A DNA stretch of 64,000 bases from IMGVR_UViG_3300032046_000001:248421-312420, one strand, 5' to 3'; counted from the first letter of the stretch, positions 8,904 through 48,207 are shown. The notes: generated by a model from the sequence alone, not told the origin. A program made the numbers and translations.

Positions 8904-9560
8904 TTAAATATTTTGATGATATTTATCATTTAAAATTTTTCGTATACTACTTATTGCGTGTTGTTCATATTTTTCTCTAAATAATTCAGTACGAAAAATA
9001 TGTTTTTTTGGATCTAAAAGAGTTAGTAAAAAATTTATTCTGGCATTTTTACTGAATGATAATCCATATTCCTTTTCAATATTATCATCATATTGATTGA
9101 AAGTTTCTTCATCAGAACCTAATATTGAAAAATCAATGTCATACATATAATTATATTCAATTATTGGTTTGGTTGATGTTCCATATTTTGTTTCTAAAAT
9201 TAAATCAGCAACTAAATCTGGATTTAATATCAAGTCTAACTCATATATTGATCTTACTGCTTCTATAGAACTTAATAATTCTGATTCTCCATTATAAGTA
9301 GTCATGATAAAATCATGCCAGAATATGGCGTACTCCATTTCTTCACGATTTGGAAGGGTTTGCTTGATACTATCTAATAGATCAATACTTCTCATAATAT
9401 GATCAATATTATGATAATGTCTTCTATGAGAAGTATATGCCGATATTAATTGATTTAAATATGCGGAGTGACTAAATCCACCACCATATAACGCAACACT
9501 TTGACATAATCTTGAAAATCTTTCTCTAAATGATGATATATCCATTATGACCACCACCAA
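8904..9560 (-). CDS. HD-superfamily predicted metal-dependent phosphohydrolase
   Basis: Y...RRHYHNIDHI, AIFWHD, DIDFSILG, FDQY...I..EY motifs. Confidence 0.85.
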   Translation of the reverse strand: MVVVIMDISSFRERFSRLCQSVALYGGGFSHSAYLNQLISAYTSHRRHYHNIDHIMRSIDLLDSIKQTLPNREEMEYAIFWHDFIMTTYNGESELLSSIEAVRSIYELDLILNPDLVADLILETKYGTSTKPIIEYNYMYDIDFSILGSDEETFNQYDDNIEKEYGLSFSKNARINFLLTLLDPKKHIFRTELFREKYEQHAISSIRKILNDKYHQNI

Positions 9561-10711
9561 TATCGCTGAATTGTCTCAGCTAATTTATGAAAACATTCTC
9601 GATCAAATTCAGTATCTGATACATTTGAATTATTGAATGTGATAATATCTCCGTGACCATCTTTTTTAATTTGATCTTGTATTCGTTTTCTAAGTTCTCC
9701 TGATGTTAATTGACTATTGATTCTTTCTTCGATTTGTTTATCAGTTAAAGATCTTGATCTTAATCTTTCATATTGTTCACTTGGGCTTGTCTCAACCAAG
9801 ATCACATTGTTATTAGATAGATAACCCAAATTAAAATCTAATATTTTATTACCGAATAAATAGGCACAATTCAGAAGAATAATACAATCTTTATTTTTCT
9901 GTAATTTCTCTCGATAGAGCATGAATAGAGCTTCATCTACTAATTTATATAGTTTAATCAATCTTTCAGGATTAGGGAAAACTTTCTCAGCCAGGATATG
10001 AGAATCTATCAAACACATACAATTATTATTAGAAAATATAATATCATCACCAAATTCGTCAACAATGTTTCGACGAATTTGTGTATAATATGGTTGAAAT
10101 CTCTGTGTATAAATCTCATGAACAAGATTATCGAAGTCTATATTAATCATCTTTAATGAACCAGCTTCAATTATCTTTTTTGTGACGAATGACTTACCAC
10201 AACCGATACCACCTACAACTCCAATAATTATTTGTCCAGAAATTTTTTTCTCAAGAGCTTGTTTGACATATAAAGGTACAAACTCATGAATGAATCCTTT
10301 GTGTTGTTCTAATACTTTAACAACAGAAGAACTCACATTTTCATACTTCTGTTCCGAAAATAAAAGTAAAGTCTCGATATTGGGAGCTTGTGATTTACCA
10401 ACTTTATATAGATTTGTTTCATACTGATAATCTTCTTGATTTCGGACACTTTTCACAATGATATCTATACCGTTTAAGATCGCATAATCAACAAGCAACC
10501 CATCAAATGCTGATACTTCAACATTAGGTATATGAGCAACTGATTTACGGATAAGTTCCAATCTCTCATATAAATTAAAAACATACTTCTTTGTTTCATT
10601 AATTCCAACGGCAACATGTACTTGTTCAAATAGTTTAGCTGCTCGTTCGATTGTATTTATATGACCAAAATGGATCGGGTCTCCACTCAGAGCAAACATA
10701 GCTTTTGACAT
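9545..10711 (-). CDS. coaD: Bifunctional phosphopantetheine adenylyltransferase / dephospho-CoA kinase (CoaD-CoaE fusion)
   Basis: N-term DPIHFGH (HxGH), FDGLLVDY, R..EDYQYE, SSSVVK; C-term IGVVGGIGCGKS P-loop plus CoaE-like segments. Confidence 0.88.
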   Translation of the reverse strand: MSKAMFALSGDPIHFGHINTIERAAKLFEQVHVAVGINETKKYVFNLYERLELIRKSVAHIPNVEVSAFDGLLVDYAILNGIDIIVKSVRNQEDYQYETNLYKVGKSQAPNIETLLLFSEQKYENVSSSVVKVLEQHKGFIHEFVPLYVKQALEKKISGQIIIGVVGGIGCGKSFVTKKIIEAGSLKMINIDFDNLVHEIYTQRFQPYYTQIRRNIVDEFGDDIIFSNNNCMCLIDSHILAEKVFPNPERLIKLYKLVDEALFMLYREKLQKNKDCIILLNCAYLFGNKILDFNLGYLSNNNVILVETSPSEQYERLRSRSLTDKQIEERINSQLTSGELRKRIQDQIKKDGHGDIITFNNSNVSDTEFDRECFHKLAETIQRYWWWS

Positions 10712-12844: not shown

Positions 12845-13171
12845 TTATTTTCTATAATTCCAATAACTTCTTTCATCTATTAATTCAGTACATTTTTCAA
12901 ACCATTCATCCACTGTATAAATTTCTGGTAAATTCAAACTAATTTTACCATAAGCACCATTATGAATTATATCAGAGGCATAAAACGTATAACCTCCAAT
13001 TTTAAAGGAATGTTTAAGATATATATTTTTTTCAAAATCATAACAAGCTCTACACTCCCGTTCTATATCACATAATAATGCCTCAGCAGATTCATACTCA
13101 GCGGGGAAAATAATTTCCCCGCCTTCATACTCACTACCATATTGATAAATAATAACGAGTCTCATCAACAA
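12845..13171 (-). CDS. Hypothetical protein
   Basis: ORF track. Confidence 0.55.
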   Translation of the reverse strand: MLMRLVIIYQYGSEYEGGEIIFPAEYESAEALLCDIERECRACYDFEKNIYLKHSFKIGGYTFYASDIIHNGAYGKISLNLPEIYTVDEWFEKCTELIDERSYWNYRK

Positions 13172-14670
13172 TCACCAGATTCGATTCGTTTCTTCATTAT
13201 TTCTTTCAATTCTTGAAGCTCTCTGCTAACCCAAACCGATTGTCTCTTTGGAAATTTAAGATCTTTCCATTGAGGTTTCAATAATGCCATTTCAGACTGA
13301 TGATATATCTTAATTTCATTAGCCATCAATGGCACTGTTAATCTCACATCATTCTGTAAAGTAGGTTGTAGCATGTTATGACGAATATCCCTTAGATCAG
13401 TATATCGTCTTCTTCCACTATTCGACCGCTCAACCATCTCTTGAGAATCAGATTTTGGTTGATCTTTTAAAGAAGTTGAATACTCTCCTTCAGAATCACG
13501 ATGTAATGATTTTTTACCAGGATCGGTCATTTTCTCTATACTACTACTAAGTTTGATGGTTGGATTACCATCAATATCAACTAATTTATAAACAACTCCT
13601 AACGGTACAGGAACAAGTTTAGTTCCAATACCATCAGCATCATTAGCTGCTTCTTTTTCCATCATCAACATTCTAGTATCTTCATCAATATCATTAGATG
13701 TAACGATCTTTACTGCTTTAAATCCGTTATCATCCAGAATCTTTCTTACAGTTTGAGAATCCCAAATTAAATCACCGGAATCGATACGAACTTTAAATCT
13801 CCGTAAACCGTGTTTATTTGCCGTTTTAAGGGCATCTCTTAGTCCTGTGAAGGTTCCATAGGTATCTAAAATAAATGCGGATTTCTCCCCAAATAACGAA
13901 GCCTGGGCATCAAAACTATAGAGTTGTCTCCTGTATGCCTCAACGGAACTATGGCTTGCTGTTCCTGATAATGGAATACCATATACTTGTCCCGCTAAAA
14001 CATTAGAACTTGATGTTGCCCCAGTGATATAGAATGCTCTTGATAATTCCAATGCCGCTTCTCTACCCATTCCTCTTCGCATATGAAAGTCTGCCCAAGG
14101 AACAGATGGATTAGCCAATGTCATTCTGGCACCATTGGTAGCACCAGCAATAACATATCCCATACATCCTAATATATAGGTTTCAATAAAATCACCGATT
14201 GCCAAAGGTGCTGTTATTTGAATTAAAGGAATATGGGGTTGAATAACAGTTCCTTCTGGAACCATTTCAACATATCCTTTAAACGATAACTCTCTTAAGT
14301 ATTCATATAATATCTCTGGAAAGTTCCATTGAGATTTGATAAAATCGATATCTCTTCCAGTCATTTCAAGCTGTTGGAGATATTCAATTACTTTTTCATT
14401 TCCCATCATTATACCGAAACTACCATTCTTTGGATTGTTTCGATAAAACATGTTAAACGTAGCGATGTCGTCTTGTTTACCAGAATGTAAATACATCGCC
14501 ATTTTCAATAGTTGATAAAAATCTGTTGACATGGCTGAGTTTAGAGGAGGTTTATCTGTAATATAAAATCTATTACCTTGAGGATCTTGAATTTCAACAT
14601 AACCATTCTTCATCACTTTCAATATTTTATTACCGCTATTGACAAGTGATTCTAAAAACTTATCATTCAT
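13165..14670 (-). CDS. pncB: Nicotinate phosphoribosyltransferase (internal start of the 13165..15171 ORF)
   Basis: TDFYQL, FHMRRG, SNVLAG..YGIP.SGTASHS, LDTY, VRIDSGDL, SNDIDE, GIGTKL, VYKLV, KxTDPGKK; SD GGAGGG ahead of ATG at 14670. Confidence 0.88.
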   Translation of the reverse strand: MNDKFLESLVNSGNKILKVMKNGYVEIQDPQGNRFYITDKPPLNSAMSTDFYQLLKMAMYLHSGKQDDIATFNMFYRNNPKNGSFGIMMGNEKVIEYLQQLEMTGRDIDFIKSQWNFPEILYEYLRELSFKGYVEMVPEGTVIQPHIPLIQITAPLAIGDFIETYILGCMGYVIAGATNGARMTLANPSVPWADFHMRRGMGREAALELSRAFYITGATSSSNVLAGQVYGIPLSGTASHSSVEAYRRQLYSFDAQASLFGEKSAFILDTYGTFTGLRDALKTANKHGLRRFKVRIDSGDLIWDSQTVRKILDDNGFKAVKIVTSNDIDEDTRMLMMEKEAANDADGIGTKLVPVPLGVVYKLVDIDGNPTIKLSSSIEKMTDPGKKSLHRDSEGEYSTSLKDQPKSDSQEMVERSNSGRRRYTDLRDIRHNMLQPTLQNDVRLTVPLMANEIKIYHQSEMALLKPQWKDLKFPKRQSVWVSRELQELKEIMKKRIESGDC

Positions 14671-15171
14671 TAAAACAATTCCCTCCAGTTTCGTTTGAAT
14701 AAGGTTGGTTGATCTACCATACCAGTATATTCGAATTTTCTTTTTCCCAAATTTAAAAGCCTCATATGGCTTTAATATATCAATTCTTGATCGAAATCGA
14801 GAACTTGTTTTATCAAGAACGATTTTTTCTCTAACTACATTATCGCTCTTGTAATAAATTTTTGTGTTTCGATCTAATCCTAATTTTACCAGATCTTTCG
14901 AAACAGCAATAATTTTGTGACGATTCTTGTTATGAATCCTGTCATTCCACGCACAAATATTTGGTGTAGAATCACATTGTTTTTTTGTGGCATTATATGC
15001 AGTTGCATCAACAATCTTACTATTTATAATCGGAATTTCCGATTGTTTAATACTCCAAATATAAAAAGATCTAAAATGATTTTTTGATTGAGTATCATAA
15101 ATTTTTGAAGTTGTAATTACTACCGGACACAATATAATTAAAATAAATAACATCATAAATGTCTTTTTCAA
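14671..15171 (-). CDS. Exported 3D-domain (MltA-like) protein, in frame with pncB and lacking its own stop
   Basis: Signal-like N-terminus; ATAYN...QCDSTP, IIAVSKDL, VLD...R..RIDI, FG.KKIRIYW. Confidence 0.7.
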
Positions 15172-30672: not shown

Positions 30673-31098
30673 TTATATCCCCAATTTGTGTAAATTAAAA
30701 AAATTTGATATTTTACCAATTATTGAGTTCTCTTTTTTCTCTACCTTTTTCATATATTCTTGATGATCATATGGTTCATACTCTATATAATTAAATGGAG
30801 TGAAATAACAATTATTTAAATTATAAGTTCTGATTAAATTTTCAATTAATTTAATTAAATCATTTGATAATACTTTATATTTGACATTAGCTGATAAACA
30901 AAATAAATCAGTATATGGATCGGCATTACAATGATCAGCATCTAATTTAATACTAATTAATTTATTTTTGCCATCTGTTATTCTAACTGAATATTTATCA
31001 ATTATATAATTTGGATCTATTTTTGTTATTCTGTAAATTTTATTATTATGAATCATTCTCTCAGGTACAAGTTTTTTTGCTATTACAAACTGTTTCAT
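30673..31098 (-). CDS. Hypothetical protein between ThiF2 and rpoC
   Basis: ATG overlaps the stop of 31098..31991; ends 5 nt before rpoC. Confidence 0.65.
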   Translation of the reverse strand: MKQFVIAKKLVPERMIHNNKIYRITKIDPNYIIDKYSVRITDGKNKLISIKLDADHCNADPYTDLFCLSANVKYKVLSNDLIKLIENLIRTYNLNNCYFTPFNYIEYEPYDHQEYMKKVEKKENSIIGKISNFFNLHKLGI

Positions 31099-31991
31099 TA
31101 TGCTGCACCAGACTCTGGAAGAAGATTTATAATATAATTATTTTGAGTCTGTGTAATTGAAATGATGTAATAGAGTTCAGGTTCATTTGAATTATTTATT
31201 AGATGTGACATTGTTGAAATGATATCATTAGCTGATTGAATTGAATTTTTGGGAATTTTTCTAATTGGATATTTATTAGAATCACCAATTGTTATTAGAA
31301 CATCTTTATTTCTATTCTCCTGAATTATATCAGTTACATTCTCTTCAAAATTTAATAATTTCTTAGATGCTTCATAATCTATAATCATGTTTCTATTATT
31401 ATATTTTTTCTTGATATCATTGGATACTTCATCTAAATAATCAAGAGATATTTCTTTCACTATTTGATTATCAATCATATAATTAATAAAACCACTTTGT
31501 AGAAAAGATGTTGCTATCATTGTTGCTTTTCTTAAATCATTTTTTGATAACAGTGTTGTATATCGGCCTTCATAATTCTTATCATATGTTATATTTTTTC
31601 TACAATCTACAACAAGATATCTGGACGTGATATACAATCTAACATCTATTTTATTTTTGCGATTATAAACAAAATCTCGACAATCAATTATTAAATCTGA
31701 ATATGGGAGTTCCGTAATTTCTTCTTCATATCTAGTTGTTAATATTTCAACATCTATATTACTTTGATCTTTTATGATATCATGAAGAACTGTTGTTTTA
31801 TATTTTCCAACATCACTCTTTCTATATATTGAATTATATGTATTCTTCATTTCAACTCTATCATAATCAACCAAGATTAATTTTTGTAAATTATCCAGTT
31901 CGGATAATGATTGAGACAAAAAACTACCTATGGTACCAAGACCAATAACTGCTACTGTTTTTATAGAAGATTCCTCCACAATTTTTTTCAA
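31098..31991 (-). CDS. ThiF/E1-family adenylyltransferase-like protein (second copy, divergent C-terminal half)
   Basis: VAVIGLGTIGS, LVDYDRVEMKN..NSIY..SDVGKYKT, DLIIDCRD. Confidence 0.8.
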   Translation of the reverse strand: MKKIVEESSIKTVAVIGLGTIGSFLSQSLSELDNLQKLILVDYDRVEMKNTYNSIYRKSDVGKYKTTVLHDIIKDQSNIDVEILTTRYEEEITELPYSDLIIDCRDFVYNRKNKIDVRLYITSRYLVVDCRKNITYDKNYEGRYTTLLSKNDLRKATMIATSFLQSGFINYMIDNQIVKEISLDYLDEVSNDIKKKYNNRNMIIDYEASKKLLNFEENVTDIIQENRNKDVLITIGDSNKYPIRKIPKNSIQSANDIISTMSHLINNSNEPELYYIISITQTQNNYIINLLPESGAA

Positions 31992-32111
31992 TATCTAAAA
32001 TTGGTGGGTAATTAAAGTTAAATAAAATATATTTTTAATTTGTTATTTAAATAAATTTTTTATTCCCATAAAAAAATAAAAAAATAAATTAGGATAATTA
32101 TAGGATAAGGG

Positions 32112-32137
32112 AAGGGATGGAATTTCTTCCATCCCTT
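32112..32137 (-). terminator. Hairpin after the Ubl gene
   Basis: AAGGGATGGAA-TTTC-TTCCATCCCTT. Confidence 0.6.
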
Positions 32138-32186
32138 TTTCCACTTATGTACTACACCCGGTATATCATATTATAATATTGGGTTA

Positions 32187-32741
32187 TTAACCCTTGCGAT
32201 CGGCAGGCTTCGTGAACTCCAGGGTCAAATCAGTCGATGTCAAAACGTAGTCGTATGCTACCTCGGTCGTACCGTTGACCAAAGCTTTGGAACCGGCAGC
32301 GATATTGAACGCTCCACTGAGCAAATTGAATACTTCCTGGACTGCATGTCCTACGGTGTCTTCGATCTCCTGTTTGTTGGTACCGCAGGTAACGACAATC
32401 TTGGTGTTGACACAGCCGTCATTGGCATTGGTGACAGTAAACGTACCGGAAACCGCAGCAAGGGCAACCCTGGTAAAATGGGCAATGAGAAGTTCCACCA
32501 AAATAGCCTTGGGTTGTTTTCCCAGACCGGACATACCATTTTCCTCGGCCAGCGTGAGCAGATCGGTAACAGACATTGCATTCAATTGTTCCCGGCTAAG
32601 AACCTCGGATTTCTCGACCATATCGTTCTCAATTACTTTGGCAATCATCTCGACGGTCTGTCCGTCCAATCCAGTGATCCCACGTCCAGCAGCGATTTGA
32701 AGAAGTTCGGCCTTTGACTTACCATTCAGTGCTTGATTCAT
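32187..32741 (-). CDS. Ubiquitin-like (beta-grasp) protein with two N-terminal Rho-N/HeH-like helical repeats
   Basis: Repeats SKAELLQIAAGRGITGL / SVTDLLTLAEENGMSGL; C-terminal domain ...ALVNG.......VL.......LEFTKPADRKG ending in a free Gly like Prok_Ub proteins. Confidence 0.75.
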   Translation of the reverse strand: MNQALNGKSKAELLQIAAGRGITGLDGQTVEMIAKVIENDMVEKSEVLSREQLNAMSVTDLLTLAEENGMSGLGKQPKAILVELLIAHFTRVALAAVSGTFTVTNANDGCVNTKIVVTCGTNKQEIEDTVGHAVQEVFNLLSGAFNIAAGSKALVNGTTEVAYDYVLTSTDLTLEFTKPADRKG

Positions 32742-32914
32742 AAAAATAATTCTCCTTTTGGAAATAGATTAGGTTCACTAAGTGAATCCTTTGAGATAAA
32801 ATACAGCGGCGACATTAATTATTTTTTTCTATCTCCTAAATAATTATAGCACCTCCCTTTGGATTTATCCATGAAGTTAGAGAGTTAAGACAACTCTCTC
32901 TTGATGGATTCTAT

Positions 32915-33181
32915 TTACTGAGTAAATTCCTGAAGCTTTTTCACTTTTCCCTCAATCCAATCAATACGATTCTTGGCATCCTGTTGACCAGCCTTAGCAG
33001 CCGAAATCTGATGATTTAGTTTCTGCACTTTTCGTGTCAAGGATTCAATTCGTTGTTCCTCCATTTGCGATGCCTGTTGAAGTTTCTTCTCAGCAACTGC
33101 AAACATTTTCAATGCGTTACCAAGAACTGTGGGAGCAACATTAATACCAAAATGAGATAATAAAATATAAAACCAGTCCAT
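32915..33181 (-). CDS. Small coiled-coil protein
   Basis: GGAGG SD, heptad pattern. Confidence 0.65.
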   Translation of the reverse strand: MDWFYILLSHFGINVAPTVLGNALKMFAVAEKKLQQASQMEEQRIESLTRKVQKLNHQISAAKAGQQDAKNRIDWIEGKVKKLQEFTQ

Positions 33182-33223
33182 TACAGACCTCCTTTACAAT
33201 ATTAAAAAGTACGAATTGTACCT

Positions 33224-33244
33224 TTCACATATTTATTATATATA
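33224..33244 (-). promoter_or_regulatory. Conserved intergenic motif variant, putative phage promoter (copy 4)
   Basis: TTCACATATTTATTATATATA; first 10 nt identical to consensus. Confidence 0.45.
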
Positions 33245-33297
33245 GATATAATCGTATATACAAGAATTTAAATATTTGGGTGCTTTGTATAATTAAA

Positions 33298-33999
33298 CTA
33301 TACTGGGAACTGTTTGGCTAAAACTTCACCTGTGAGAATATCGAAATCATTCTCACAGGTGGTATCGAGTTGACCAAGGATACAGATCTTGTAAAATCGA
33401 CACAACACAATCCATGCCGCTCCCATGTTTGCGAATAACAATTGTGGTTCTGCTTGATGCAATGCCTCACATCCGAGACGCTGAGGGTGTTGTCCATCAC
33501 CAACGGATATCTCTTCATGGTATCTGGTAATTGACGCAGTGTAGTTTTGTCCTGCAATCCGAACGTTTGTCAAAACATCGCCGGTGTAGAATCCATTACC
33601 CCCAGAAATTAAAACTACATTTTGCAGGGTAGCAACTTTTTCTGCAATCAACGCTCTGGTATCATGATTGTCAACACACACTAATACAATATCATCTTCT
33701 TGGATGATACTACTAATGTTGCTCTCACTGAGATATTCAGGAACCGAATGGATAGTTAAATCATACTTCTGCATGAGTTCGGTGGCTTTAATCTCGGCTT
33801 TATTACCGAAGTTATAAAAATCCTGTCTCTCCCGATTACGCTGCTCGAAGCTATCTCCGTCTACGATAGTTACCTCGAAGGTGTCAGCCTCTTCGCCTTC
33901 TGCTGGTTGCGGATGATAATAATTGAGGAATTGGCACAACGGATCAAGTAATTTAGTACCAATACCACCAGCACCTATAACTTTAATCGACCGATTCAT
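33298..33999 (-). CDS. E1-like ubiquitin-activating ThiF-family enzyme
   Basis: VIGAGGIGT, DGDSFEQRNRERQ, K(A), VCVDNH, GGNG, GCE....PQLLFAN (candidate catalytic Cys). Confidence 0.88.
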   Translation of the reverse strand: MNRSIKVIGAGGIGTKLLDPLCQFLNYYHPQPAEGEEADTFEVTIVDGDSFEQRNRERQDFYNFGNKAEIKATELMQKYDLTIHSVPEYLSESNISSIIQEDDIVLVCVDNHDTRALIAEKVATLQNVVLISGGNGFYTGDVLTNVRIAGQNYTASITRYHEEISVGDGQHPQRLGCEALHQAEPQLLFANMGAAWIVLCRFYKICILGQLDTTCENDFDILTGEVLAKQFPV

Positions 34000-35191
34000 A
34001 TGCTGAAATCTCCTCTTTTGTCATAATGATTACTCCTTCAGAGTCAATCATGTTGCCATTAGAATCATATGATAATTCAAAATCGCGGTTGTTGTTTGGT
34101 GTGTGTTCACCATAACATCCCATAGTTGTCAATAATAAGTCATCGACCAATCCACCTTCCATTGCCTGAATAGCAATATTACGATAATGACACTTTGGAC
34201 AGATGGTATAATCAATTAGTGGATAATAATCTGTATCATCACTACCATAACAATCAGGACGGGCAATTGGAGATGTTGGTGAATATTCAGGAGTTTTAGC
34301 AGGACTTGGAAGATACTTCGTTTCCGACGGAACATATGTGTTGTTTGATTGGGAAGAACATTTGATAAGTTTACCACCAACGAATTTATATACTACATCG
34401 GGTGTATAAACCATGTTCTCATACCATTCTATGGGAACCTCAACAGCATCCATATCAACGTCTAAACTAAAATGAAATTTAGTTGCAACCGATTGCGCTG
34501 TTACATCTGTCATATTATGAGTCGATACTTTAGATGCGGCATAATCTTCCCATACAGCACCCGAAGACACATACTTGGTTTCTTCCCGACTTGTGATTGT
34601 AACATCAAGATATCTTAATATTTCCTCCTCTTTAAGTTGAAATCTATTGCCGTTAATAACAATCGCTGCCGTGACCGATGGGGTATCTGTATTTATGTGT
34701 CCAAACACAATATGAATACCATCCAACTCACCCTCACTACCTTTGTCGGTACCACTATGAAACGCCGACATTGCACCACCGTGTGAGTGTAGTGTTCCAA
34801 CATACATAAAATCTTTCGGTGGACTGGAATTCTTCCAATCCGTTGACGCGCCCGAAATTTTCTGATTGGGAACATCAAATAAATAAAACTCGGTATATGG
34901 ATTATAGAAAATCCGTATACCAGCTTCAGATTTGTACGTTTCATAGATCTGTTTGAAAAACTTAAGACCTTGAGCTAACAAATCTTTGTGAATCTTCGGT
35001 ATCTTCATCTCCCCAAACGGTTGTAGTTTGGGGAGATGACTGATTCCATTAACCTTAGTTAAACTTCTCAATAATTGTTGATTCTTTAGAACAAAGTTGC
35101 CGTTACCGGCAACGATGTATAAAAGATCCTGGTCTTCAGGCAAGACATAATCCTTCGGTAATATAATAACAGGAATTTCACCAAATTTCAT
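33983..35191 (-). CDS. JAB/MPN (JAMM) metalloisopeptidase with C-terminal extension
   Basis: SEAG, P.Q..S, GTLHSHG.MSAFHSGTD, GIHIVFG; start placed at ATG 35191 just after the upstream stop. Confidence 0.88.
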   Translation of the reverse strand: MKFGEIPVIILPKDYVLPEDQDLLYIVAGNGNFVLKNQQLLRSLTKVNGISHLPKLQPFGEMKIPKIHKDLLAQGLKFFKQIYETYKSEAGIRIFYNPYTEFYLFDVPNQKISGASTDWKNSSPPKDFMYVGTLHSHGGAMSAFHSGTDKGSEGELDGIHIVFGHINTDTPSVTAAIVINGNRFQLKEEEILRYLDVTITSREETKYVSSGAVWEDYAASKVSTHNMTDVTAQSVATKFHFSLDVDMDAVEVPIEWYENMVYTPDVVYKFVGGKLIKCSSQSNNTYVPSETKYLPSPAKTPEYSPTSPIARPDCYGSDDTDYYPLIDYTICPKCHYRNIAIQAMEGGLVDDLLLTTMGCYGEHTPNNNRDFELSYDSNGNMIDSEGVIIMTKEEISAYESVD

Positions 35192-35192
35192 A

Positions 35193-37607
35193 TTAATTAT
35201 CCTCACTAACATTTGGAATTGTTGATGGATAATATCCATCAGAAAACGTATGAGTATTCCCATTTACAAAATTCGGGAGACTCTCATAAACAACATGTGA
35301 ATGGTTTTTAGATAATCTGGGGTCTAAAATACCATATCTCTTAAAATCTGGATTATTCTGTGAACTTACCACAGCCTTTGAACGGAAAGATCCTGTTTTC
35401 ACAAAAACAGGATCAATTAACATATACAACTTTCCGAGGTATGTGTTGTCATCATTGAAAACGAATAAATTATCACTTTTGGTACATAGATCACCTGTCT
35501 GCCAAGGAATCTTGGCCAAGTTTATTGTTTCGGGTGTTCTGGCTGATGTAACTACGTTGAAGTTATTGGTTAAATCTTCAACAGTAATTGTCAGACCATT
35601 TCCACACAATATAAGAGGCTTTTCACCATCGACAATAAATGCGTCAATTCTGTTTATCACCTTTTTCGGAAATCCTAATATTCCAGGATTCTTAGCTTGG
35701 ATAAGACCAACTTCAATACCATTCAGAGACTTGGATGCTTTCCTAATAGATCCGATGTAAACTCTACCGTTTGATAGGTTGATATATTGAGAACTAGTTG
35801 TTTCTTCACCACATCGTAATTCAAAATTCAAATAACCATTTGATCTGGCAAATGCTGTAATCGTCCAGATTTTACCAATTGTATCAGGATTGTTCCAGTT
35901 AGGACATACAACCTCATCACCAACACTGAAATTGATATCGACATCATATGATGGTATATGTAACTTGGTACCATCATTCGTCAATATATCCTCAAGTGCT
36001 GTTTCGCGGAAGAAAGTACTGCTCCAGATATTGGATGAGTCGTTACTGGAAAAAATGCCTATGCCTTTTACAATACGAAAATCTCGATCGGTTATAATCT
36101 GATCCAAAAATCTGAATGTTCTGGATTGAGTAATCCTTGGGTCATTTGCTTCAAAAATTGAGAAATCACCATTATAGATTGAATCTACAGAGATTCCTCG
36201 CTCATCACCATCACCACCGAAGAATATGTGGAGAATGTTGTAAGAATTATTCTGAATACGAAGCATTCTCCCGGTGAAGTAGGTCCGATATTGATTATTA
36301 AAGATCACATAATCCTTACCAGAAACCAATTCAGTATCGCCAGCCTTCACAGAATCGATTACGTCATATGTACCATCCAATGCCAGAAAGAACTTTGAAC
36401 CGATGACGAATTCAATCGTATTATCTCTGGCTAACCTAATCTTATCTACAACCTCATAGGTATTCATAGATTTGATTTTGATTATTGTGCCTGATGATAC
36501 GGTTTTACCATCAACTGTTAATGATTGTAAATAATTCGTTCTTTGAGCGGCAACATCTGTTTCCCATTGGGCTAATAAGGCTGGTGTTAACTCAACAGTA
36601 ATTTTTTCATTATTGAGATTAACCAGTTCCACCTGTTTAGGTGTATTAAAATTTCCCCTAATGGTATCAATATACCAATCTGCTTCTTCATATATTAATT
36701 TGTCGCCAATACTTACGACGCTCTCAACTAACCTGAAATTTTGATATATGGTTGATCCATTACCTCCAGATAGTTGTTCGTCAAGTGGTACAACAAACAC
36801 TCTCTCAAAGGTTGGAACTGTTCTAGAGACAACAAAAGTATCAATCTCCTGATACAATGTTTTATCGTGCATTATCAATGGAATGTTAAATCCGAATGTT
36901 GGTTTTTGACTAGCCATTGACCAAGCCAGAAAGGAATTCATCGGCGGTGTATTCTTGTATTTATCATGACGACAGCGATATTCCGCTGCAAATGGTGCTG
37001 CCCAATACAGAGCAATTAATTCTTCAACAGCAGATGACAGAGTATGAGTTTGTTTTGACCATGAACGTTTGTTACCACCAAAACAAACTTCATTGCCACT
37101 ACTAACATTAAATAAATTTGCATATCCCAAATAGTCGCCGGATGCTCCCAATGGATGATTTCGGAAAAATACCCGACAATAGGGAACTTCAAATACATCC
37201 TTTTTTTCCTGAACGAAGAGAAGAAACACTATATATGGTAATTGGATTCGGAGCGAGTACGGTATTTGTTGCCCTTCCAGCAACGATTCTAGTCCTAGTG
37301 CCGCCTGTCCACTCTTCTTGGTTGTTCTTGTTTCTTCAACAAAATCCCAGTCAAACTTCAAATGTCTTGATCTTGGAGCTTCCTCAATAACCAGAACTCT
37401 TGCACCACCTGAGCATGGAATATTTAATCTACAATTCCTGGGCAAAACATGACAGTCAGATCCCAACTGACTGGTAATTCGGGCAATATAATCTGCTGTT
37501 CGTATTAATTTTTTCCTGAAGACTGGTTGGGCTTCACCATTTTCTCCAATAATGGATTCAACAAACGATGTAGTTTCTTTGTCGATTATTAACGTGGGAT
37601 TTGTCAT
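35193..37607 (-). CDS. Prokaryotic E2-like conjugating domain fused to a ~550-aa beta-rich extension
   Basis: VLVIEEAPRSR, LPYIVF, FFRNHPL, ANLFNV..G.EVCFG (Cys at the E2 active-site position), YWAAPF. Confidence 0.72.
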   Translation of the reverse strand: MTNPTLIIDKETTSFVESIIGENGEAQPVFRKKLIRTADYIARITSQLGSDCHVLPRNCRLNIPCSGGARVLVIEEAPRSRHLKFDWDFVEETRTTKKSGQAALGLESLLEGQQIPYSLRIQLPYIVFLLFVQEKKDVFEVPYCRVFFRNHPLGASGDYLGYANLFNVSSGNEVCFGGNKRSWSKQTHTLSSAVEELIALYWAAPFAAEYRCRHDKYKNTPPMNSFLAWSMASQKPTFGFNIPLIMHDKTLYQEIDTFVVSRTVPTFERVFVVPLDEQLSGGNGSTIYQNFRLVESVVSIGDKLIYEEADWYIDTIRGNFNTPKQVELVNLNNEKITVELTPALLAQWETDVAAQRTNYLQSLTVDGKTVSSGTIIKIKSMNTYEVVDKIRLARDNTIEFVIGSKFFLALDGTYDVIDSVKAGDTELVSGKDYVIFNNQYRTYFTGRMLRIQNNSYNILHIFFGGDGDERGISVDSIYNGDFSIFEANDPRITQSRTFRFLDQIITDRDFRIVKGIGIFSSNDSSNIWSSTFFRETALEDILTNDGTKLHIPSYDVDINFSVGDEVVCPNWNNPDTIGKIWTITAFARSNGYLNFELRCGEETTSSQYINLSNGRVYIGSIRKASKSLNGIEVGLIQAKNPGILGFPKKVINRIDAFIVDGEKPLILCGNGLTITVEDLTNNFNVVTSARTPETINLAKIPWQTGDLCTKSDNLFVFNDDNTYLGKLYMLIDPVFVKTGSFRSKAVVSSQNNPDFKRYGILDPRLSKNHSHVVYESLPNFVNGNTHTFSDGYYPSTIPNVSEDN

Positions 37608-37636
37608 GATAACATCCTTTCCAAGTAATATAAAAT

Positions 37637-38620
37637 TTAATTTCTCTTATCTGCATGGATTAGATCATTATAATCGTATGCAGATGTCATGATACAACTC
37701 GTCCAATTACATCCCTCACAAACTTTATTTTGGTCATATTGTAAATTATTTTTCAATTCATCCAGATTCATTAAATATTCATCAATTGTCATTGATGGTG
37801 TTTTCAATCCTCTGATTCTTAAACATAACCTAACCATACCATCTGCATCGATAACAATATTATCCAGTGATTGAACATGGCATTTGAAATTATAGGGTAA
37901 ATTTTCATATAATATCTTCAAACTTTGAGGCATATGAATATTATAGTTTTTTGCCTGTTCTAATATTTCTTTCAATTCAGGTGTTTTGTGGACTATCAAG
38001 TCGCTATTTTTTTCTATTCCAGCAAAATCATAATATTTATTTTTATAAGCATCAATAAAAGATATTACACTATTGATACCATGACCAGTTAAAAGTTCCA
38101 ATGTTTTAATTAAATATTTATAATTTCTGCTATCACATGTTACTTCCGCAACAGGATCTTTTATTCTGTCTTTATATTTTAATAAACAATTCAATCCATA
38201 GAGACTTTTAAAATATCTGTCCTTATCATACTGTTCACTGAATATTATGGGGTCGATTGAAGTTGTAAAACCCATTACTTCTCCAACTTCTGAAAAAAAT
38301 CGATCTAATAAATCTGTACATGTACCATTAGAAATTATCGTGTATAAAATACTGTTTTCATTACAGTATTTTATAATATCAATTAAGTCATTATGAAGTA
38401 ATGGTTCACCTCCCATAAAAATATGAAAACATTCTGGATTATTAATTTTCATCAAGTCCAGTATTTTCACTATATTAATATATTTAATTTGATACTTATT
38501 AAAATAATAAATATTTGGATATGGAGCATCGAGATAATATTTTGCAATCCTACAATACTCACAGCTTAAATTACATTGTCTATTCAAAAACCAAGTCATG
38601 ACCTTTATATCTTTTATCAT
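37637..38620 (-). CDS. Radical SAM enzyme with C-terminal Cys cluster
   Basis: CNLSCEYC, FMGGEPLL, ISNG, IDADG.V.LC, CEGCNWTSC. Confidence 0.9.
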   Translation of the reverse strand: MIKDIKVMTWFLNRQCNLSCEYCRIAKYYLDAPYPNIYYFNKYQIKYINIVKILDLMKINNPECFHIFMGGEPLLHNDLIDIIKYCNENSILYTIISNGTCTDLLDRFFSEVGEVMGFTTSIDPIIFSEQYDKDRYFKSLYGLNCLLKYKDRIKDPVAEVTCDSRNYKYLIKTLELLTGHGINSVISFIDAYKNKYYDFAGIEKNSDLIVHKTPELKEILEQAKNYNIHMPQSLKILYENLPYNFKCHVQSLDNIVIDADGMVRLCLRIRGLKTPSMTIDEYLMNLDELKNNLQYDQNKVCEGCNWTSCIMTSAYDYNDLIHADKRN

Positions 38621-38675
38621 TTTAACTCCAAATAAAATAAAAACATTTAATTTTTTTTAAAAAAATTAAAACATC

Positions 38676-38711
38676 AAATAAGGAGAGAGAATAAGTTCTC
38701 TCTCCTTATTT
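38676..38711 (-). terminator. Perfect 16-bp hairpin terminator after porin operon
   Basis: AAATAAGGAGAGAGAA-TAAG-TTCTCTCTCCTTATTT. Confidence 0.75.
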
Positions 38712-38732
38712 AGCCACCATCATCGGAACATC

Positions 38733-38999
38733 CTACTTCTTCTTAGTCTTTTCTCGTGGGAAATAGGCGGGTGATTGTAGATAATCCTTCATCCAGTGAT
38801 TTCTTTCAGCCTTCTGGAAGTTCTGATACTGATCATAATTCATGCCATAATTATGATAATACTCGGCATCCCGCTCCAATTTGTTTTGACCACAACCAAA
38901 TATAGGCATAAATAACAAAACACATACAATACATATGAAATAATTTTTCATAAATTTTCTCCTATAAAGGGAAGGAAAATATTTCTCCTTCCCAGTCAA
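38733..38999 (-). CDS. Small lipoprotein (probable start MKNYFICI)
   Basis: LLFMPIFGC lipobox. Confidence 0.65.
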   Translation of the reverse strand: MTGKEKYFPSLYRRKFMKNYFICIVCVLLFMPIFGCGQNKLERDAEYYHNYGMNYDQYQNFQKAERNHWMKDYLQSPAYFPREKTKKK

Positions 39000-39030
39000 T
39001 AAATCTGGTTGATGGTCTGATCAATCAGAA

Positions 39031-40026
39031 TTAAAAGGTGTATGTCAAAGCACCAATGCTCTGGTTCTGACTAAGTTGCCAATCGGCATAGTGTGTCAGT
39101 TCGAGGTCGAGATTTTTGATTCCAGTTGGTAAAGTAATCGCTACTGCATGACCATTATCGAATGGGAAATCAATATCAGCCATTATTGATTTCGAATCAA
39201 TTTCTCGATAATTATAGTCAACTGTTACCTCACCTATTCCTAACTTGGCACCAGCCAACCAGGACACAACATTATCACCAACAGTCACAGCATAATCACC
39301 GTATATAGATGATGTATCATAGCCGATTTCAGCCATTGCCTCCCTATAGGCATTCCCTTCATAGAAATCATAATATCCGACTGCTCCAACAATATATGCC
39401 TTATCGCCGATCTGGATGCCGATCTGACCACCATTCATAACATCATTGAAATATCCACCAGTGGCAAAACACGAAAGAGTCCGGTCATCATTAACAGCGA
39501 AATAGTTGGATGCAACACCTTCTCCACGAAAGACATCAGTATCGAACAAAAGACCAGAATCACCAGGAGTCTGAAATGGTAATTCGCTTTTACCGAGATG
39601 TAATTCAAGACCTGGAAACAAATCCGGGGTAATATTCAAATTGGCAACATCAATCATGGCATCATCTTGTTGTTGATCACCAACTTGTTGGGTTCCAGTA
39701 TTAAGTCGAAAATACAAATCGGCCTGATTATCCAAAGCAATACCGAGGCCAAACCGGATGCGATAATCCTGGGAATATTCATTGAGTTGGTGATCATACA
39801 ATGTGCGATAACGGGCATCACCATCAACAAAGAATTTAGAAGGATCTGTAACGCCGGGATTTTCTCTCTCGAAAATTTCCCACTCTTCCTCAGCGGTTTC
39901 AGCATAGACGGTATCCTCAGTTCTGAGACTGGTGGTTGTACCTTCTTCATAGGTGTTGAAAGCATAGACATTGATATGAGCAAAGAGCACCAACAATAAA
40001 ACAAACACGACATAATACTTTTTCAT
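39031..40026 (-). CDS. Putative outer-membrane beta-barrel (porin-like)
   Basis: Signal peptide, amphipathic beta strands (RIRFGLG, YFRLNTG), C-terminal ALTYTF aromatic beta-signal. Confidence 0.7.
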   Translation of the reverse strand: MKKYYVVFVLLLVLFAHINVYAFNTYEEGTTTSLRTEDTVYAETAEEEWEIFERENPGVTDPSKFFVDGDARYRTLYDHQLNEYSQDYRIRFGLGIALDNQADLYFRLNTGTQQVGDQQQDDAMIDVANLNITPDLFPGLELHLGKSELPFQTPGDSGLLFDTDVFRGEGVASNYFAVNDDRTLSCFATGGYFNDVMNGGQIGIQIGDKAYIVGAVGYYDFYEGNAYREAMAEIGYDTSSIYGDYAVTVGDNVVSWLAGAKLGIGEVTVDYNYREIDSKSIMADIDFPFDNGHAVAITLPTGIKNLDLELTHYADWQLSQNQSIGALTYTF

Positions 40027-40103
40027 AGTTTTTTCCTTTCGAGTAAAATAGATTTAACATCAATTTAAAAACTTGGTATCAAATATCAATTTTTAAATTA
40101 TTT

Positions 40104-40376
40104 TCACCTCCTTTCAAAAAGATCCTCATAAATTTCATCCTCAGTATCACCAACTGGTAAATGTGGTGGACGTGATGTTGATCGTAACTTCTGACAAACA
40201 TCCTGATAAAATTTTTGTTTCCATGCTAACTCTTGATCTTCTTCGTCACGTTGACGAGACTTAACGGCTTCTGCTGTCTCATGAATAACACCAGACAATC
40301 CCTCTTCTAATTCAAAACTTCCATCTTCGGTTATTATAATAACCATTATATTATCTCCCATACAAAATTTTGACAA
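40104..40376 (-). CDS. Hypothetical protein
   Basis: ORF track, first gene after motif copy 5. Confidence 0.55.
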   Translation of the reverse strand: MSKFCMGDNIMVIIITEDGSFELEEGLSGVIHETAEAVKSRQRDEEDQELAWKQKFYQDVCQKLRSTSRPPHLPVGDTEDEIYEDLFERR

Positions 40377-46904: not shown

Positions 46905-47113
46905 TCTAATTTACCATCTTGTTTTAAAATTTCAATACATCTTTCACAAGTGACTTTATCTACAATAAATGTCCTTTTAACTTTCTTCGTTCTGTCACCA
47001 CAAAGAGTTTTACACAAATAATGATCATAATGATCATATGAAGGATAGTGTATTAATTTATAATTACTGTTTTTCACAACATATAAGAGTTTTGTGGGAA
47101 TTTTTCTTTTCAT
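46901..47113 (-). CDS. Small zinc-finger protein
   Basis: H...TLCG...VTCERC. Confidence 0.6.
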   Translation of the reverse strand: MKRKIPTKLLYVVKNSNYKLIHYPSYDHYDHYLCKTLCGDRTKKVKRTFIVDKVTCERCIEILKQDGKLE

Positions 47114-48207
47114 TTACACTTTTTCACCTCATTCGGAGTCACTGCCTTGTGAAGCCAGTGATGGCGATTCTTTACATCTTCACTAAATCGTTGGGCTACA
47201 AATTTGGCAACTGAATTTTTAAATTCTCGATATGGAAAACTACTTGTAAGTCTAATGACATAACCTTCACAATCGTCATTTTCAAAATTAGAACGATATA
47301 AATTTTTAATCAAATCAGCATTAAATGGTCCGACATATACTATCGGGACAGTTTCCAGTCCGAGTAAGTAGCACCATTCAGTTGTTGTTTTCCAATCTAA
47401 ACATATGTTATTCTCATCCCAAATTGAATATACCATAAAATAATTTCTCAAATTATGATAATGAATCGTATGTTTGGCAAATAAATTTTCACCACATATT
47501 CTCCAACCATCTGGTATATCATAACAGATTTGAGAATGTAGATTCTTAATCCAAGTTCTTGATGGGTGATTACCACTATCGATAGAACGGGCATGATAAT
47601 AATCTTTATAAAGACTTGATTGTTCACCATCCATCTTCACCGTTAAAACAATCTGTTTTCCAATGAAATGATCAATTGATTGTAATCTCTTATCATCACT
47701 TGTTACCGTCTCTGACCAAGGTAAGTGATAGGTCCTTGGATATTTAATATATGGACAAAATAAATCAAGAACTGGTTCTATAATCTTCTGAACCGATTCA
47801 TCAAAGAATAATGGACCTCTTAATCGTCTTCCATTTTGAAGAATAATATTACCCCATTTATCATATCGTTCATCGGTATAAAAGTCTTCAGGTAAAACTA
47901 TTTCAGTAATACCTGAAGACTCTCTTATTTGGTCACAACTTATGATTGTTTGTTCAGCTTTTATATGACAATCTCCACATAATGATGCTCCATTATTTAA
48001 ATAATAACCGCCATCATTGAATAATCTTCTTTCGATTATATGATGAGCGTCTTGAGATGGAGATTTACAAATGACGCATTGATTATTATCTCTCTTGAAT
48101 ACTTCGGTTCTAAAAACATCCCTTGAAAGTAACATAGAAACCTCCTTTAATTTATGAAAACCATTCTTCTGCTGTTCCTTCATATTCACAAAATAAATAT
48201 GATTCAT
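47110..48207 (-). CDS. HNH domain - RNA ligase fusion
   Basis: VFKRD..QCVIC...DAHHI...NGASLC.DCH; then KYPRTYHLPWS, KMDGE (motif I), ICGEN, EGYVIR, KFV. Confidence 0.82.
   Translation of the reverse strand: MNHIYFVNMKEQQKNGFHKLKEVSMLLSRDVFRTEVFKRDNNQCVICKSPSQDAHHIIERRLFNDGGYYLNNGASLCGDCHIKAEQTIISCDQIRESSGITEIVLPEDFYTDERYDKWGNIILQNGRRLRGPLFFDESVQKIIEPVLDLFCPYIKYPRTYHLPWSETVTSDDKRLQSIDHFIGKQIVLTVKMDGEQSSLYKDYYHARSIDSGNHPSRTWIKNLHSQICYDIPDGWRICGENLFAKHTIHYHNLRNYFMVYSIWDENNICLDWKTTTEWCYLLGLETVPIVYVGPFNADLIKNLYRSNFENDDCEGYVIRLTSSFPYREFKNSVAKFVAQRFSEDVKNRHHWLHKAVTPNEVKKCK

Follow-up and report, generated by a model that had tools for sequence, protein, structure and literature searches.

A ubiquitin-like protein-tagging gene cassette in the core genome of uncultivated jumbo phages, inferred from sequence

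A whole clade of uncultivated giant bacteriophages carries a complete set of genes that look like a ubiquitin-style protein-tagging machine. The genes are a fixed part of the core genome, next to the phage's own RNA polymerase (RNAP) genes. Systems of this kind have so far been characterized only on the bacterial (anti-phage) side. We analyzed a 64,000-nucleotide stretch (the window) of a 312-kb IMG/VR viral contig (IMGVR_UViG_3300032046_000001:248421-312420). The contig is from a jumbo phage and encodes RNAP beta and beta', SbcCD, topoisomerase II and a helicase.

We found that four motifs reported in a first-pass annotation are present where that annotation placed them, in consecutive, co-oriented open reading frames on the minus strand. 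These are an E2-like Cys motif, a JAMM motif, a ThiF nucleotide-binding motif with a candidate Cys, and a beta-grasp-like protein ending in KPADRKG. The observation is therefore confirmed. However, the span given (32187-37607) is too short at its low end, as two more conserved genes lie just downstream. The annotation also did not include a helix-extended-helix (Rho_N) domain on the ubiquitin-like protein (Ubl) or an array of beta-barrels on the E2-like protein.

The six genes are found together and in one order. A search for synteny in other phages had been proposed as a check, and we recovered 91 loci from metagenomes, with protein identities down to about 25%. The order E2-like protein (E2L)-JAB-ThiF1-Ubl-ThiF2-mini protein was identical in all 91 loci, 41 of which were complete, and no locus with room for the next gene lacked it. 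This is far more than expected by chance. Several genes overlap: the median distance was -9 nt for E2L to JAB, -4 nt for JAB to ThiF1, and -4 nt (41 loci) for ThiF2 to the mini protein. The cassette always sat between a radical-SAM gene and the RNAP beta'/beta genes. We found it in no cultured phage. There were only 2 hits in 185,579 species genomes, both in short MAG contigs, and the one inspected has phage-type synteny.

The E2-like protein (35193-37607, minus strand; 804 aa) contains the sequence NVSSGNEVCFG, with Cys175. Its family comprises 335 clusters at 50% identity among 1.84 billion representatives, nearly all 800-900 aa. Residues E75, P124, N167, C175 and Y217 are invariant in 146 sequences. 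Seven residues separate Asn167 and Cys175, and canonical UBC enzymes (HPN...Cys) have the same spacing. The window protein alone scored 14.2 bits (E 0.036) against Pfam Prok-E2_D (PF14460, UBC-like E2 superfamily), below the gathering cut-off of 25 bits, and three relatives (P0034, P0044 and P0072) scored 20-23 bits. The match spans residues 162-220, which include Cys175 (profile positions 91-145 of 171). At the level of the family the relationship is recognizable and specific: 30 of 56 diverse members hit Prok-E2_D (best E 4.6e-8), and every other Pfam family was hit by one member only.

Failure of this region to adopt a UBC fold had been named beforehand as grounds for rejecting the proposal. 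An AlphaFold2 (AF2) model built on 83 sequences was confident (pLDDT 89.6), and the order of its elements around Cys175 (helix, beta-meander, Cys loop, then helices) is compatible with a UBC fold. However, Foldseek with the whole 804-residue model returned no UBC enzyme, because the C-terminal repeats dominate, and the N-terminal domain was not searched alone. Profile searches against PDB sequences found no E2. By structure, then, the evidence favors neither answer. The region related to Prok-E2_D is approximately residues 70-250. The C-terminal part, approximately residues 285-800, is an array of small SH3/Tudor/KOW-like beta-barrels, for which Foldseek matched Spt5 KOW arrays, tandem Tudor domains and Mind bomb repeats.

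The JAB/JAMM metallopeptidase gene lies at 33983-35191 (minus strand). The open frame runs on to 35263, but the likely true start is M25 at 35191, one base after the E2L stop, giving 402 aa as in relatives. The protein contains HSHGGAMSAFHSGTD, an N-terminal JAB-N-like domain, and a variable C-terminal part containing CxxC. It matched NCBIfam PRTRC_A (2e-10) over model positions 7-190 of 192, although below the curated cut-off. Seven of 7 diverse orthologues hit only PRTRC_A (best E 3.4e-14). The motif HxH-x7/8-S-x2-D is present in 66 of 66 sequences, with one extra residue in the spacer in the window copy, and the catalytic Glu, both His, Ser and Asp are 100% conserved in 62 sequences.

The E1-like adenylating enzyme, ThiF-1 (33298-33999, minus strand; 233 aa), starts within the end of the JAB gene. 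It contains VIGAGGIG, DGDSFEQRNRERQ, VDNHDTR, and a Cys in LGCE. It scored 49.5 bits against Pfam ThiF (3.9e-13; cut-off 28.1). It keeps every adenylation motif: across 57 orthologues, G9/G11/G12/G14, D47-G-D49, E52, N55, R58-Q59, K67, D110-N-H112, R115, S132-G-G-N135 and Cys177 are all 100% conserved. Cys177 might form the thioester with the Ubl, but its position relative to the crossover loop was not checked on a structure.

The Ubl (32187-32741, minus strand; 184 aa) ends in LEFTKPADRKG. It has two N-terminal helix-extended-helix (HeH, Rho_N-type) motifs, a linker, and a C-terminal domain resembling ThiS/TGS and ending in Gly184. Rho_N was hit by 8 of 8 members (best E 8.6e-10). A C-domain that was not a beta-grasp had also been named in advance as a refutation. 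In 27 diverse members, C-domain hits were essentially all to beta-grasp families (TGS 23, ThiS 18, Ub-Mut7C 13, ThiS-like 3), but these were sub-threshold (best E about 1.5e-4). The AF2 model had low confidence (pLDDT 60.7), with a beta-beta-alpha-beta-beta-beta C-domain and weak Foldseek matches that include ubiquitin, FAT10, LC3 and ISG15. These results are consistent with a beta-grasp fold without deciding the matter. The Lys-Gly end is invariant. Of 50 complete genes, 27 stop right after Gly, 22 after Gly-Cys and 1 after Gly-Thr-Asn; one further relative ends Gly-Tyr-Asn-Gly.

Between ThiF-1 and the Ubl is a gene (32915-33181, minus strand) for an 88-aa protein (cc88) with a hydrophobic N-terminus and a coiled coil, which gave only weak coiled-coil hits. 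It is a lineage-specific insert, present in the window and in L001 and L002 (two of the loci) only. It is absent at this position in the other clades, where the median ThiF1-to-Ubl gap is 26 nt. In the window's lineage the block E2L-JAB-ThiF1-cc88-Ubl shares a shifted composition (GC3 0.30-0.54, compared to 0.14-0.22 in the flanks), suggesting that it moved as one unit.

The first of the two additional genes encodes ThiF-2 (31098-31991, minus strand; 297 aa), a second and divergent E1-like protein. It scored 48.6 bits against Pfam ThiF (7.4e-13) and hit the E1 part of PADLOC E1-E2 models (best E 9e-9). It lacks the R-Q motif and about 32 residues that ThiF-1 has. GxGxxG, D42, K65, D103-C-R-D106 and R111 are 100% conserved in 43 sequences. 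A C-terminal extension of roughly 130 aa has no recognizable fold family and ends in E-[ST]-G-A-A, a tail conserved in 43 of 44 sequences. The second gene (30673-31098, minus strand) encodes a 141-aa mini protein (110-160 aa in the family) with a conserved HPN-x8-Cys motif (HCN in this lineage), present in 39 of 40 sequences. H56, N58, C67 and P12 are 100% conserved in 38 sequences. Alignment with hhalign to the 804-aa family placed N58 with N167, C67 with C175 and FNxD with FNxD, but at E 0.054 and probability 1%, and the protein has no Pfam or PDB sequence hit. It is a candidate minimal E2-like partner of ThiF-2, and the proposed role of the pair rests on motifs alone.

Our results are best explained, with moderate confidence, by a phage-encoded Ubl conjugation and deconjugation system distantly related to the uncharacterized bacterial PRTRC / 'E2 family D' cassettes. 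The analysis supports the family-level identity of the four parts and shows their linkage and their location in a phage; the mechanism that follows is inferred from homology at every step, and neither conjugation nor attachment to target lysines was assayed. In this view, the 150-185-aa modifier is made with a free C-terminal Gly or with 1-3 extra residues that the JAB peptidase would trim, and JAB would also reverse conjugates. ThiF-1 would adenylate the terminal Gly and may hold it on Cys177, and the modifier would then pass as a thioester to Cys175 of E2L. The large, highly conserved barrel array of E2L would act as a built-in substrate or scaffold adaptor (an E2/E3 hybrid), directing isopeptide formation on target lysines. 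ThiF-2 and the mini protein are translationally coupled and probably form a second E1/E2-like pair in the same pathway. They could be an additional transfer step, a partner subunit of the E1, or a branch in which ThiF-2's own tail is the activated C-terminus.

The first-pass interpretation was partly supported. The identities of the Ubl, E1, E2-like and JAB parts hold at the family level, but its proposal that the system tags host defense proteins or jams host Bil/CBASS conjugation is not favored. In that reading the phage machinery would tag and inactivate host immune proteins, or its JAB and E1/E2 would compete with or reverse host Bil or type II CBASS conjugation. All characterized bacterial Ubl-conjugation systems act in phage-host conflict, a phage-borne deconjugating peptidase could in principle strip host-attached Ubls, and the five-gene block in the window's lineage looks exchanged as a unit, as conflict genes often are. 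However, the cassette is an invariant, collinear core module in all 91 loci, not a sporadic accessory gene, whereas Bil and CBASS are sparsely distributed in hosts. Its JAB and E2 resemble the PRTRC type rather than Cap3/Cap2 or Bil (BilC for the JAB), and PADLOC gave no Bil or Cap hits for E2L, JAB or Ubl. We consider a counter-defense role unlikely. Because the modifier carries one or two HeH nucleic-acid-binding motifs and the cassette is a fixed core module beside the RNAP genes, we favor targets on the phage's or host's DNA/RNA-associated machinery, serving the phage's own program.

A broader possibility is not excluded, although we think it doubtful. A virus-owned, multi-step cascade with two E1-like and two Cys-bearing E2-like proteins, one a giant E2/E3-type hybrid, would attach a modifier with a nucleic-acid-binding domain to components of the phage or host transcription or nucleoid machinery. 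Protein tagging would then be a core regulatory layer of the infection program of an entire jumbo-phage clade.

The results might also indicate a sulfur-carrier or biosynthetic pathway, in which a ThiS-like protein is adenylated and thiocarboxylated by the ThiF proteins and donates sulfur to modify a nucleoside, cofactor or peptide, with JAB only processing the carrier. The best family hits of the Ubl C-domain are ThiS and TGS, families that include sulfur carriers, and two ThiF-type enzymes are present. JAB peptidases process sulfur carriers in some cysteine and siderophore pathways, and such contexts are listed by Iyer et al. 2006. A radical-SAM protein (37637-38620, minus strand; 327 aa; Pfam Radical_SAM 1.1e-8, with weak SPASM-maturase and viperin-like hits) could take part, as its gene is upstream of E2L in 49 of 49 loci with enough flank, 3-1258 nt away. 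Its membership in the system is uncertain: adjacency to it and to RNAP may reflect only collinearity of the whole region, and its composition stays native where the E2L-to-Ubl block is shifted. In addition, two conserved Cys-bearing E2-like proteins have no role in sulfur transfer, no rhodanese, cysteine desulfurase or sulfurtransferase domain was detected in the cassette proteins, and the carrier ends Lys-Gly rather than Gly-Gly and has a nucleic-acid-binding N-terminal domain. This pathway is therefore improbable.

Least likely is a role in virion morphogenesis like that of the lambda/T1 tail-assembly Ubl (TAPI) with the JAB+NlpC/P60 protein TAPK, with Ubl and JAB as assembly chaperone and processing protease and E2L as a structural protein. 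Both are phage-encoded Ubl domains with a conserved C-terminal Gly next to a JAB peptidase, a pairing known from tail-assembly clusters (Iyer et al. 2006), and the E2L barrels weakly resemble phage receptor-binding and 'phage tudor' modules. However, the tail-assembly pair has no E1 or E2, whereas two of each are conserved here, and there is no NlpC/P60 domain and there are no tail genes nearby, the neighbors being SbcCD, radical-SAM, RNAP, topoisomerase and helicase genes. PHROGs has no family for E2L, JAB or the mini protein.

Among known systems, the closest are the PRTRC cassettes of plasmids and ICEs (NCBIfam TIGR03734-03742, including TIGR03735/TIGR03736). We infer that these correspond to operon type 6d of Iyer et al. 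2006: JAB with a JAB-N domain, an E1-like protein, a small Ubl with C-terminal Gly, and an E2-like protein of the Prok-E2_D family. The phage JAB matches PRTRC_A over the whole model, including the N-terminal domain, ThiF-1 weakly matches PRTRC_ThiF (1.3e-10), the E2-like domain matches Prok-E2_D, and the Ubl is a separate protein ending in Gly. Both are carried by mobile or selfish elements, and the function of both is unknown. However, the scores are far below the PRTRC cut-offs (40.6 against 101.8 bits for PRTRC_A and 41.0 against 144.75 for PRTRC_ThiF). No cassette protein hit PRTRC B, C, D or E or any other PRTRC model, none of the nine proteins from 30673 to 40026 hit a ParB model, and the conserved six-gene order has no such member. 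The phage system also differs in the roughly 520-residue barrel array fused to the E2-like domain, the Rho_N/HeH domain on the Ubl, the second ThiF-like protein, the HPN-Cys mini protein, and its location in lytic-type jumbo phages next to RNAP genes.

Like the phage cassette, Bil (bacterial ISG15-like) systems, types I and II, have separate E1, E2, Ubl and JAB-type deconjugase genes, and their Ubl may carry extra N-terminal domains. In contrast, Bil is a host defense that tags phage tail proteins, whereas the present system is phage-owned, the phage E2 belongs to a different family (Prok-E2_D), and PADLOC Bil models do not match apart from a weak BilD hit to ThiF-2 (E 0.001). Type II CBASS, with Cap2 (an E2-E1 fusion) and Cap3 (JAB), likewise combines E1 chemistry, an E2 Cys and a JAB, and the C-terminal tail of ThiF-2 recalls the way an enzyme's own C-terminus (the CD-NTase) is the conjugated end in CBASS. 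Here, however, there is no CD-NTase and no effector, E1 and E2 are separate proteins, a dedicated modifier (putatively beta-grasp) is present, and PADLOC E1-E2 models match only the Rossmann part of ThiF-2. In architecture only, as no sequence relationship was tested, E2L recalls the eukaryotic giant E2/E3 hybrid enzymes of the UBE2O and BIRC6 type, in that a UBC-like catalytic domain would be embedded in a very large protein whose other domains bind substrates.

The window is AT-rich (about 27% G+C), and almost every gene in it is on the minus strand. It comes from a 312,420-bp viral contig (IMGVR_UViG_3300032046_000001) on which PHROGs identifies RNAP beta and beta' homologues, SbcC, topoisomerase II, a helicase, an RNA ligase and NAD-salvage enzymes. 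The element is therefore a jumbo phage with its own multisubunit RNAP. It has no close cultured relative, as its beta' is at most 29% identical to anything in the GenBank phage set. The NAD-salvage genes (9545-10711 and 13165-15171; NMN adenylyltransferase-like and nicotinamide phosphoribosyltransferase-like) are of the kind used against NAD-depleting defences. The RNA ligase homologue (47110-48207; phrog_24030, 6e-135) has an HNH-endonuclease-like segment near its N-terminus.

We found that the four motifs described in the first-pass annotation are all present in consecutive minus-strand ORFs, and the observation stands. These are an 804-aa protein (35193-37607) with GNEVCFG, a JAB protein (33983-35263, probably starting at 35191) with HSHGGAMSAFHSGTD, a 233-aa ThiF protein (ThiF-1; 33298-33999), and a 184-aa protein (32187-32741) ending LEFTKPADRKG. 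The annotation had read these as the E2, JAB, E1 and Ubl of a phage-owned conjugation system that could tag host defence proteins, regulate phage proteins or jam host Bil/CBASS conjugation. Our results support this interpretation only in part: the four family assignments hold at family level, whereas a role against host defences is disfavoured.

Evidence from single sequences was thin. The window proteins alone gave ThiF above its cut-off, PRTRC_A at 2e-10 for the JAB, Prok-E2_D at E 0.036 for the 804-aa protein, and nothing for the Ubl C-domain. Single-sequence searches against PDB sequences gave nothing for the E2-like protein, JAB or Ubl, and profile searches of the PDB sequences with alignments of the E2-like protein, the small protein described below (mini), the ThiF-2 C-terminal region and the Ubl found no informative relative. 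The best PDB hit of the Ubl profile was an FHA domain (E 0.0016) that rests on the shared strand motif 'NG..V..DY.LK.GD'. We rejected this match because no member hit Pfam FHA, whereas 23 of 27 hit TGS.

In contrast, evidence at the family level is strong. A word-indexed search found only six close relatives of the 804-aa protein, but a full HMMER profile search of 1.84 billion cluster representatives found 335 clusters at E <= 1e-3, and 170 at E <= 1e-30. Nearly all are 800-900 aa and align end to end. In 146 of these sequences, E75, P124, N167, C175 and Y217 are invariant. We scanned 56 diverse members one by one against Pfam. Thirty hit Prok-E2_D (best E 4.6e-8), and no other family was hit by more than one member. 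The matched stretch covers profile positions 58-157 of 171 and includes Cys175. Asn167 and Cys175 are separated by seven residues, which is the spacing between the Asn of the HPN motif and the catalytic Cys in canonical E2 enzymes.

The absence of a UBC fold in the E2 region had been named in advance as an outcome that would count against the reading, and we examined the fold using a predicted structure. With an alignment of 83 sequences, AlphaFold2 gave a confident model (pLDDT 89.6). Around Cys175 the order is helix, three-stranded meander (117-149), a long loop carrying Asn167 and Cys175, then helices (190-260), an order compatible with a UBC-like core. Residues about 285-800 are a chain of small beta-barrels, which Foldseek matched to Spt5 KOW arrays, tandem Tudor domains and Mind bomb repeats. 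Because these repeats dominated the search with the full 804-residue model, it could not test the UBC fold, and we could not confirm that fold by superposition. The mini protein, ThiF-2 and complexes of the cassette proteins were not modelled.

The JAB and E1 assignments were also supported by their families. Seven JAB orthologues spanning the family all hit only NCBIfam PRTRC_A (best E 3.4e-14), over the whole model. The HxH...S..D motif is intact in 66 of 66, and the catalytic Glu is 100% conserved. In 57 ThiF-1 orthologues every adenylation motif is 100% conserved, as is Cys177.

A modifier without a beta-grasp domain would likewise have counted against the reading. Across 27 diverse C-domains of the Ubl, TGS is hit by 23, ThiS by 18, Ub-Mut7C by 13 and ThiS-like by 3, and all of these are beta-grasp families. 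The AlphaFold2 model of the Ubl was poor (pLDDT 60.7), and we use it only as weak support, so that the fold itself is not settled by these data. The conserved pattern '...LVNG.EV..DYVLK.GD.LEFLKPAG.KG' resembles the C-terminal pattern of ThiS/MoaD, although this resemblance was not tested. All eight first-round relatives end ...KPADRKG, one with three extra residues. Of 50 complete genes, 27 stop directly after the Gly, 22 after Gly-Cys and one after Gly-Thr-Asn, which is the behaviour of a modifier whose Gly must be exposed by a peptidase. The N-terminal part is a Rho_N-type helix-extended-helix (HeH) motif in 8 of 8, and the window copy has two. The ThiS-like domain, together with two ThiF proteins and a radical-SAM neighbour, might also indicate a sulfur-carrier pathway. 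However, no sulfurtransferase domain was detected in the cassette proteins, and this alternative leaves two E2-like proteins unexplained.

We found that the system is larger than the span originally annotated, as two further genes lie immediately downstream. ThiF-2 (31098-31991) is a second, divergent ThiF protein. It keeps GxGxxG, the ribose-binding Asp, Lys65 and DCRD, but lacks the Arg-Gln motif and a 32-residue segment, and it has an extension of roughly 130 residues. In 43 of 44 genes from the fetched loci the C-terminus is ...[ED][ST]G[AS]A directly followed by the stop codon. Such a conserved tail on an E1-like enzyme suggests that the tail itself is a substrate (adenylated or conjugated) or a regulatory plug. 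We tested whether the extension is a fused Ubl, but no beta-grasp signal appeared; it matches no known family, and we could not assign it a fold.

The next gene (30673-31098) encodes the mini protein, of 110-160 aa, whose only invariant residues are P12, H56, N58 and C67. They form HPN-x8-C in 39 of 40 genes, the signature motif of E2 enzymes with one extra spacer residue. The start of the gene overlaps the ThiF-2 stop, with a median of -4 nt in 41 loci, and it is translationally coupled to ThiF-2. A profile-profile comparison (hhalign) with the 804-aa family aligned Asn with Asn, Cys with Cys and a downstream FNxD with FNxD, but the result was not significant (E 0.054, probability 1%) and we kept it as a lead only. 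There were no Pfam or PDB hits. We therefore treat this protein as a candidate minimal E2, not an established one.

To determine whether the arrangement is conserved across huge phages, as had been proposed as a check, we fetched 10 loci by exact-protein look-up and a genome scan, and 80 more from JGI metagenomes, and searched them with HMMs built from our alignments. In all 91 loci the order is E2L-JAB-ThiF1-Ubl-ThiF2-mini (E2L, the E2-like protein). Forty-one loci are complete, and every incomplete one ends at a contig or locus edge. The surrounding genes are just as constant: the radical-SAM gene is upstream in 49 of 49 loci with enough flank, SbcC is further upstream in 38 of 38, and RNAP beta' is downstream in 35 of 35. 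The whole region is a collinear piece of the core genome of the clade, which argues for a housekeeping role in infection. It also means that adjacency to RNAP is not in itself evidence of a functional link. This core-gene behaviour, together with affinities of the PRTRC type rather than the Bil/CBASS type, disfavours a counter-defence device. A role like that in tail assembly finds no support from an NlpC/P60 domain or from structural context, as both are absent.

The radical-SAM protein (37637-38620) gives weak matches to SPASM peptide maturases and to prokaryotic viperins (PADLOC pVip 2.6e-12, over the N-terminal 110 residues only). In most other clades a WYL_2 (PF10902) protein and one or two unknown proteins of about 115 aa sit between the radical-SAM gene and the E2-like gene (fetched loci L003, 6743-7993; L007, 6666-7353; L008, 434-1146; L009, 227-1244). 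These are absent from the lineage of the window. A sigma-70 promoter scan was no better than shuffles (60 against 51 +/- 6.5), which is uninformative because the phage has its own RNAP.

The cassette appears to belong to phages. Only two hits were found in 185,579 species-representative genomes, both on short MAG contigs, and the one that we inspected has the same phage synteny. There was no hit in 50,697 GenBank phage records or in PHROGs; megablast and tblastn against GenBank phages found nothing for the cassette, and it was absent from INPHARED, the cultured-phage genome database searched. A scan of IMG/VR with the close-family patterns returned only the contig of the window.

In the window and its close relative L001, the block E2L-JAB-ThiF1-cc88-Ubl (32187-37607 in the window; 7604-13054 in L001) has a GC3 of 0.30-0.54, with sharp boundaries at the gene edges, in a genome with GC3 around 0.15-0.22. 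The radical-SAM gene, ThiF-2, the mini protein and RNAP have 0.14-0.22. The cc88 gene (32915-33181) encodes an 88-aa protein with a hydrophobic N-terminus and a coiled coil; it is inserted between ThiF-1 and the Ubl only in the lineage of the window and shares the shifted composition of the block. In three other clades the cassette matches its background. We considered recent acquisition from a bacterium, but rejected it as a general explanation because other clades carry the cassette at native composition and cellular genomes lack it. The simplest reading is that this lineage replaced the five-gene block in place with a homologous block from a higher-GC relative, which treats those five genes as one functional unit. 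We consider such a replacement likely, although support from identity ratios is only mild (0.61-0.66 for ThiF-1 and the Ubl, against 0.75-0.80 for the flanks). A second higher-GC islet (38733-40376) encodes an 88-aa lipoprotein-like protein, a 331-aa porin-like protein with a signal peptide and a weak Porin_5 match (9.9e-5), and an acidic 90-aa protein. An outer-membrane-type protein in a phage hints at a Gram-negative host. A perfect hairpin with a 17-bp stem (38675-38712, minus strand) lies between the 88-aa gene and the radical-SAM gene, and may be a terminator or a regulatory element marking the start of a radical-SAM/E2L/JAB/ThiF-1 transcription unit.

Our analysis establishes the domain identities at family level, the invariant catalytic residues, the conserved exposed or extended Gly, and the operon-like coupling of the genes. 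The mechanism that we suggest goes beyond these findings and is inferred, as neither the chemistry nor the targets were examined. In this view, JAB would trim precursors of the Gly-Cys type and reverse conjugates, ThiF-1 would adenylate the Gly, and the modifier would move to Cys175 of the E2-like protein, whose conserved barrel array would select targets in the manner of an E2/E3 hybrid. ThiF-2 and the HPN-Cys protein would add a second E1/E2-like step or branch. The HeH head on the modifier points to nucleic-acid-associated targets.

Every experimentally characterized prokaryotic Ubl-conjugation system (type II CBASS, Bil, Bub) is host-encoded, and those with a known role act against phages. 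The cassette is, as predicted from its genes, a complete write-and-erase set on the virus side, fixed in the core genome of a large, diverse and uncultivated jumbo-phage clade (335 protein clusters at 50% identity and more than 100 metagenomic loci). Neither PHROGs nor PADLOC has a family for the E2-like protein or JAB. Full-text searches found no description of a complete phage-encoded Ubl/E1/E2/JAB system in the literature that we could search, and a comparative review of 224 jumbo phages does not mention one. The nearest precedent is E1-like genes alone in Asgard-archaeal viruses. If the system conjugates, bacterial viruses, like eukaryotic viruses, would be shown to use ubiquitin-type tagging for their own programme, and the long-uncharacterized PRTRC / E2-family-D branch would gain a tractable model. 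New parts would also become available: an E2 fused to a large adaptor array, a Ubl with a DNA/RNA-binding head, and an E1-like protein with an invariant C-terminal tail.

The closest known kind of system is the uncharacterized PRTRC cassette of plasmids and ICEs, which appears in the literature only as an annotation label. We equate this, by inference, with operon type 6d of Iyer et al. 2006 (PMC1779556), which comprises a JAB with JAB-N, an E1, a small Gly-ended Ubl and an E2-like protein. By the curated criteria the phage system is not a member: all scores are far below the cut-offs, there is no ParB-like gene, and there are no hits to the other PRTRC proteins. It differs from Bil, CBASS and Bub in E2 family and architecture, and in being virus-owned.
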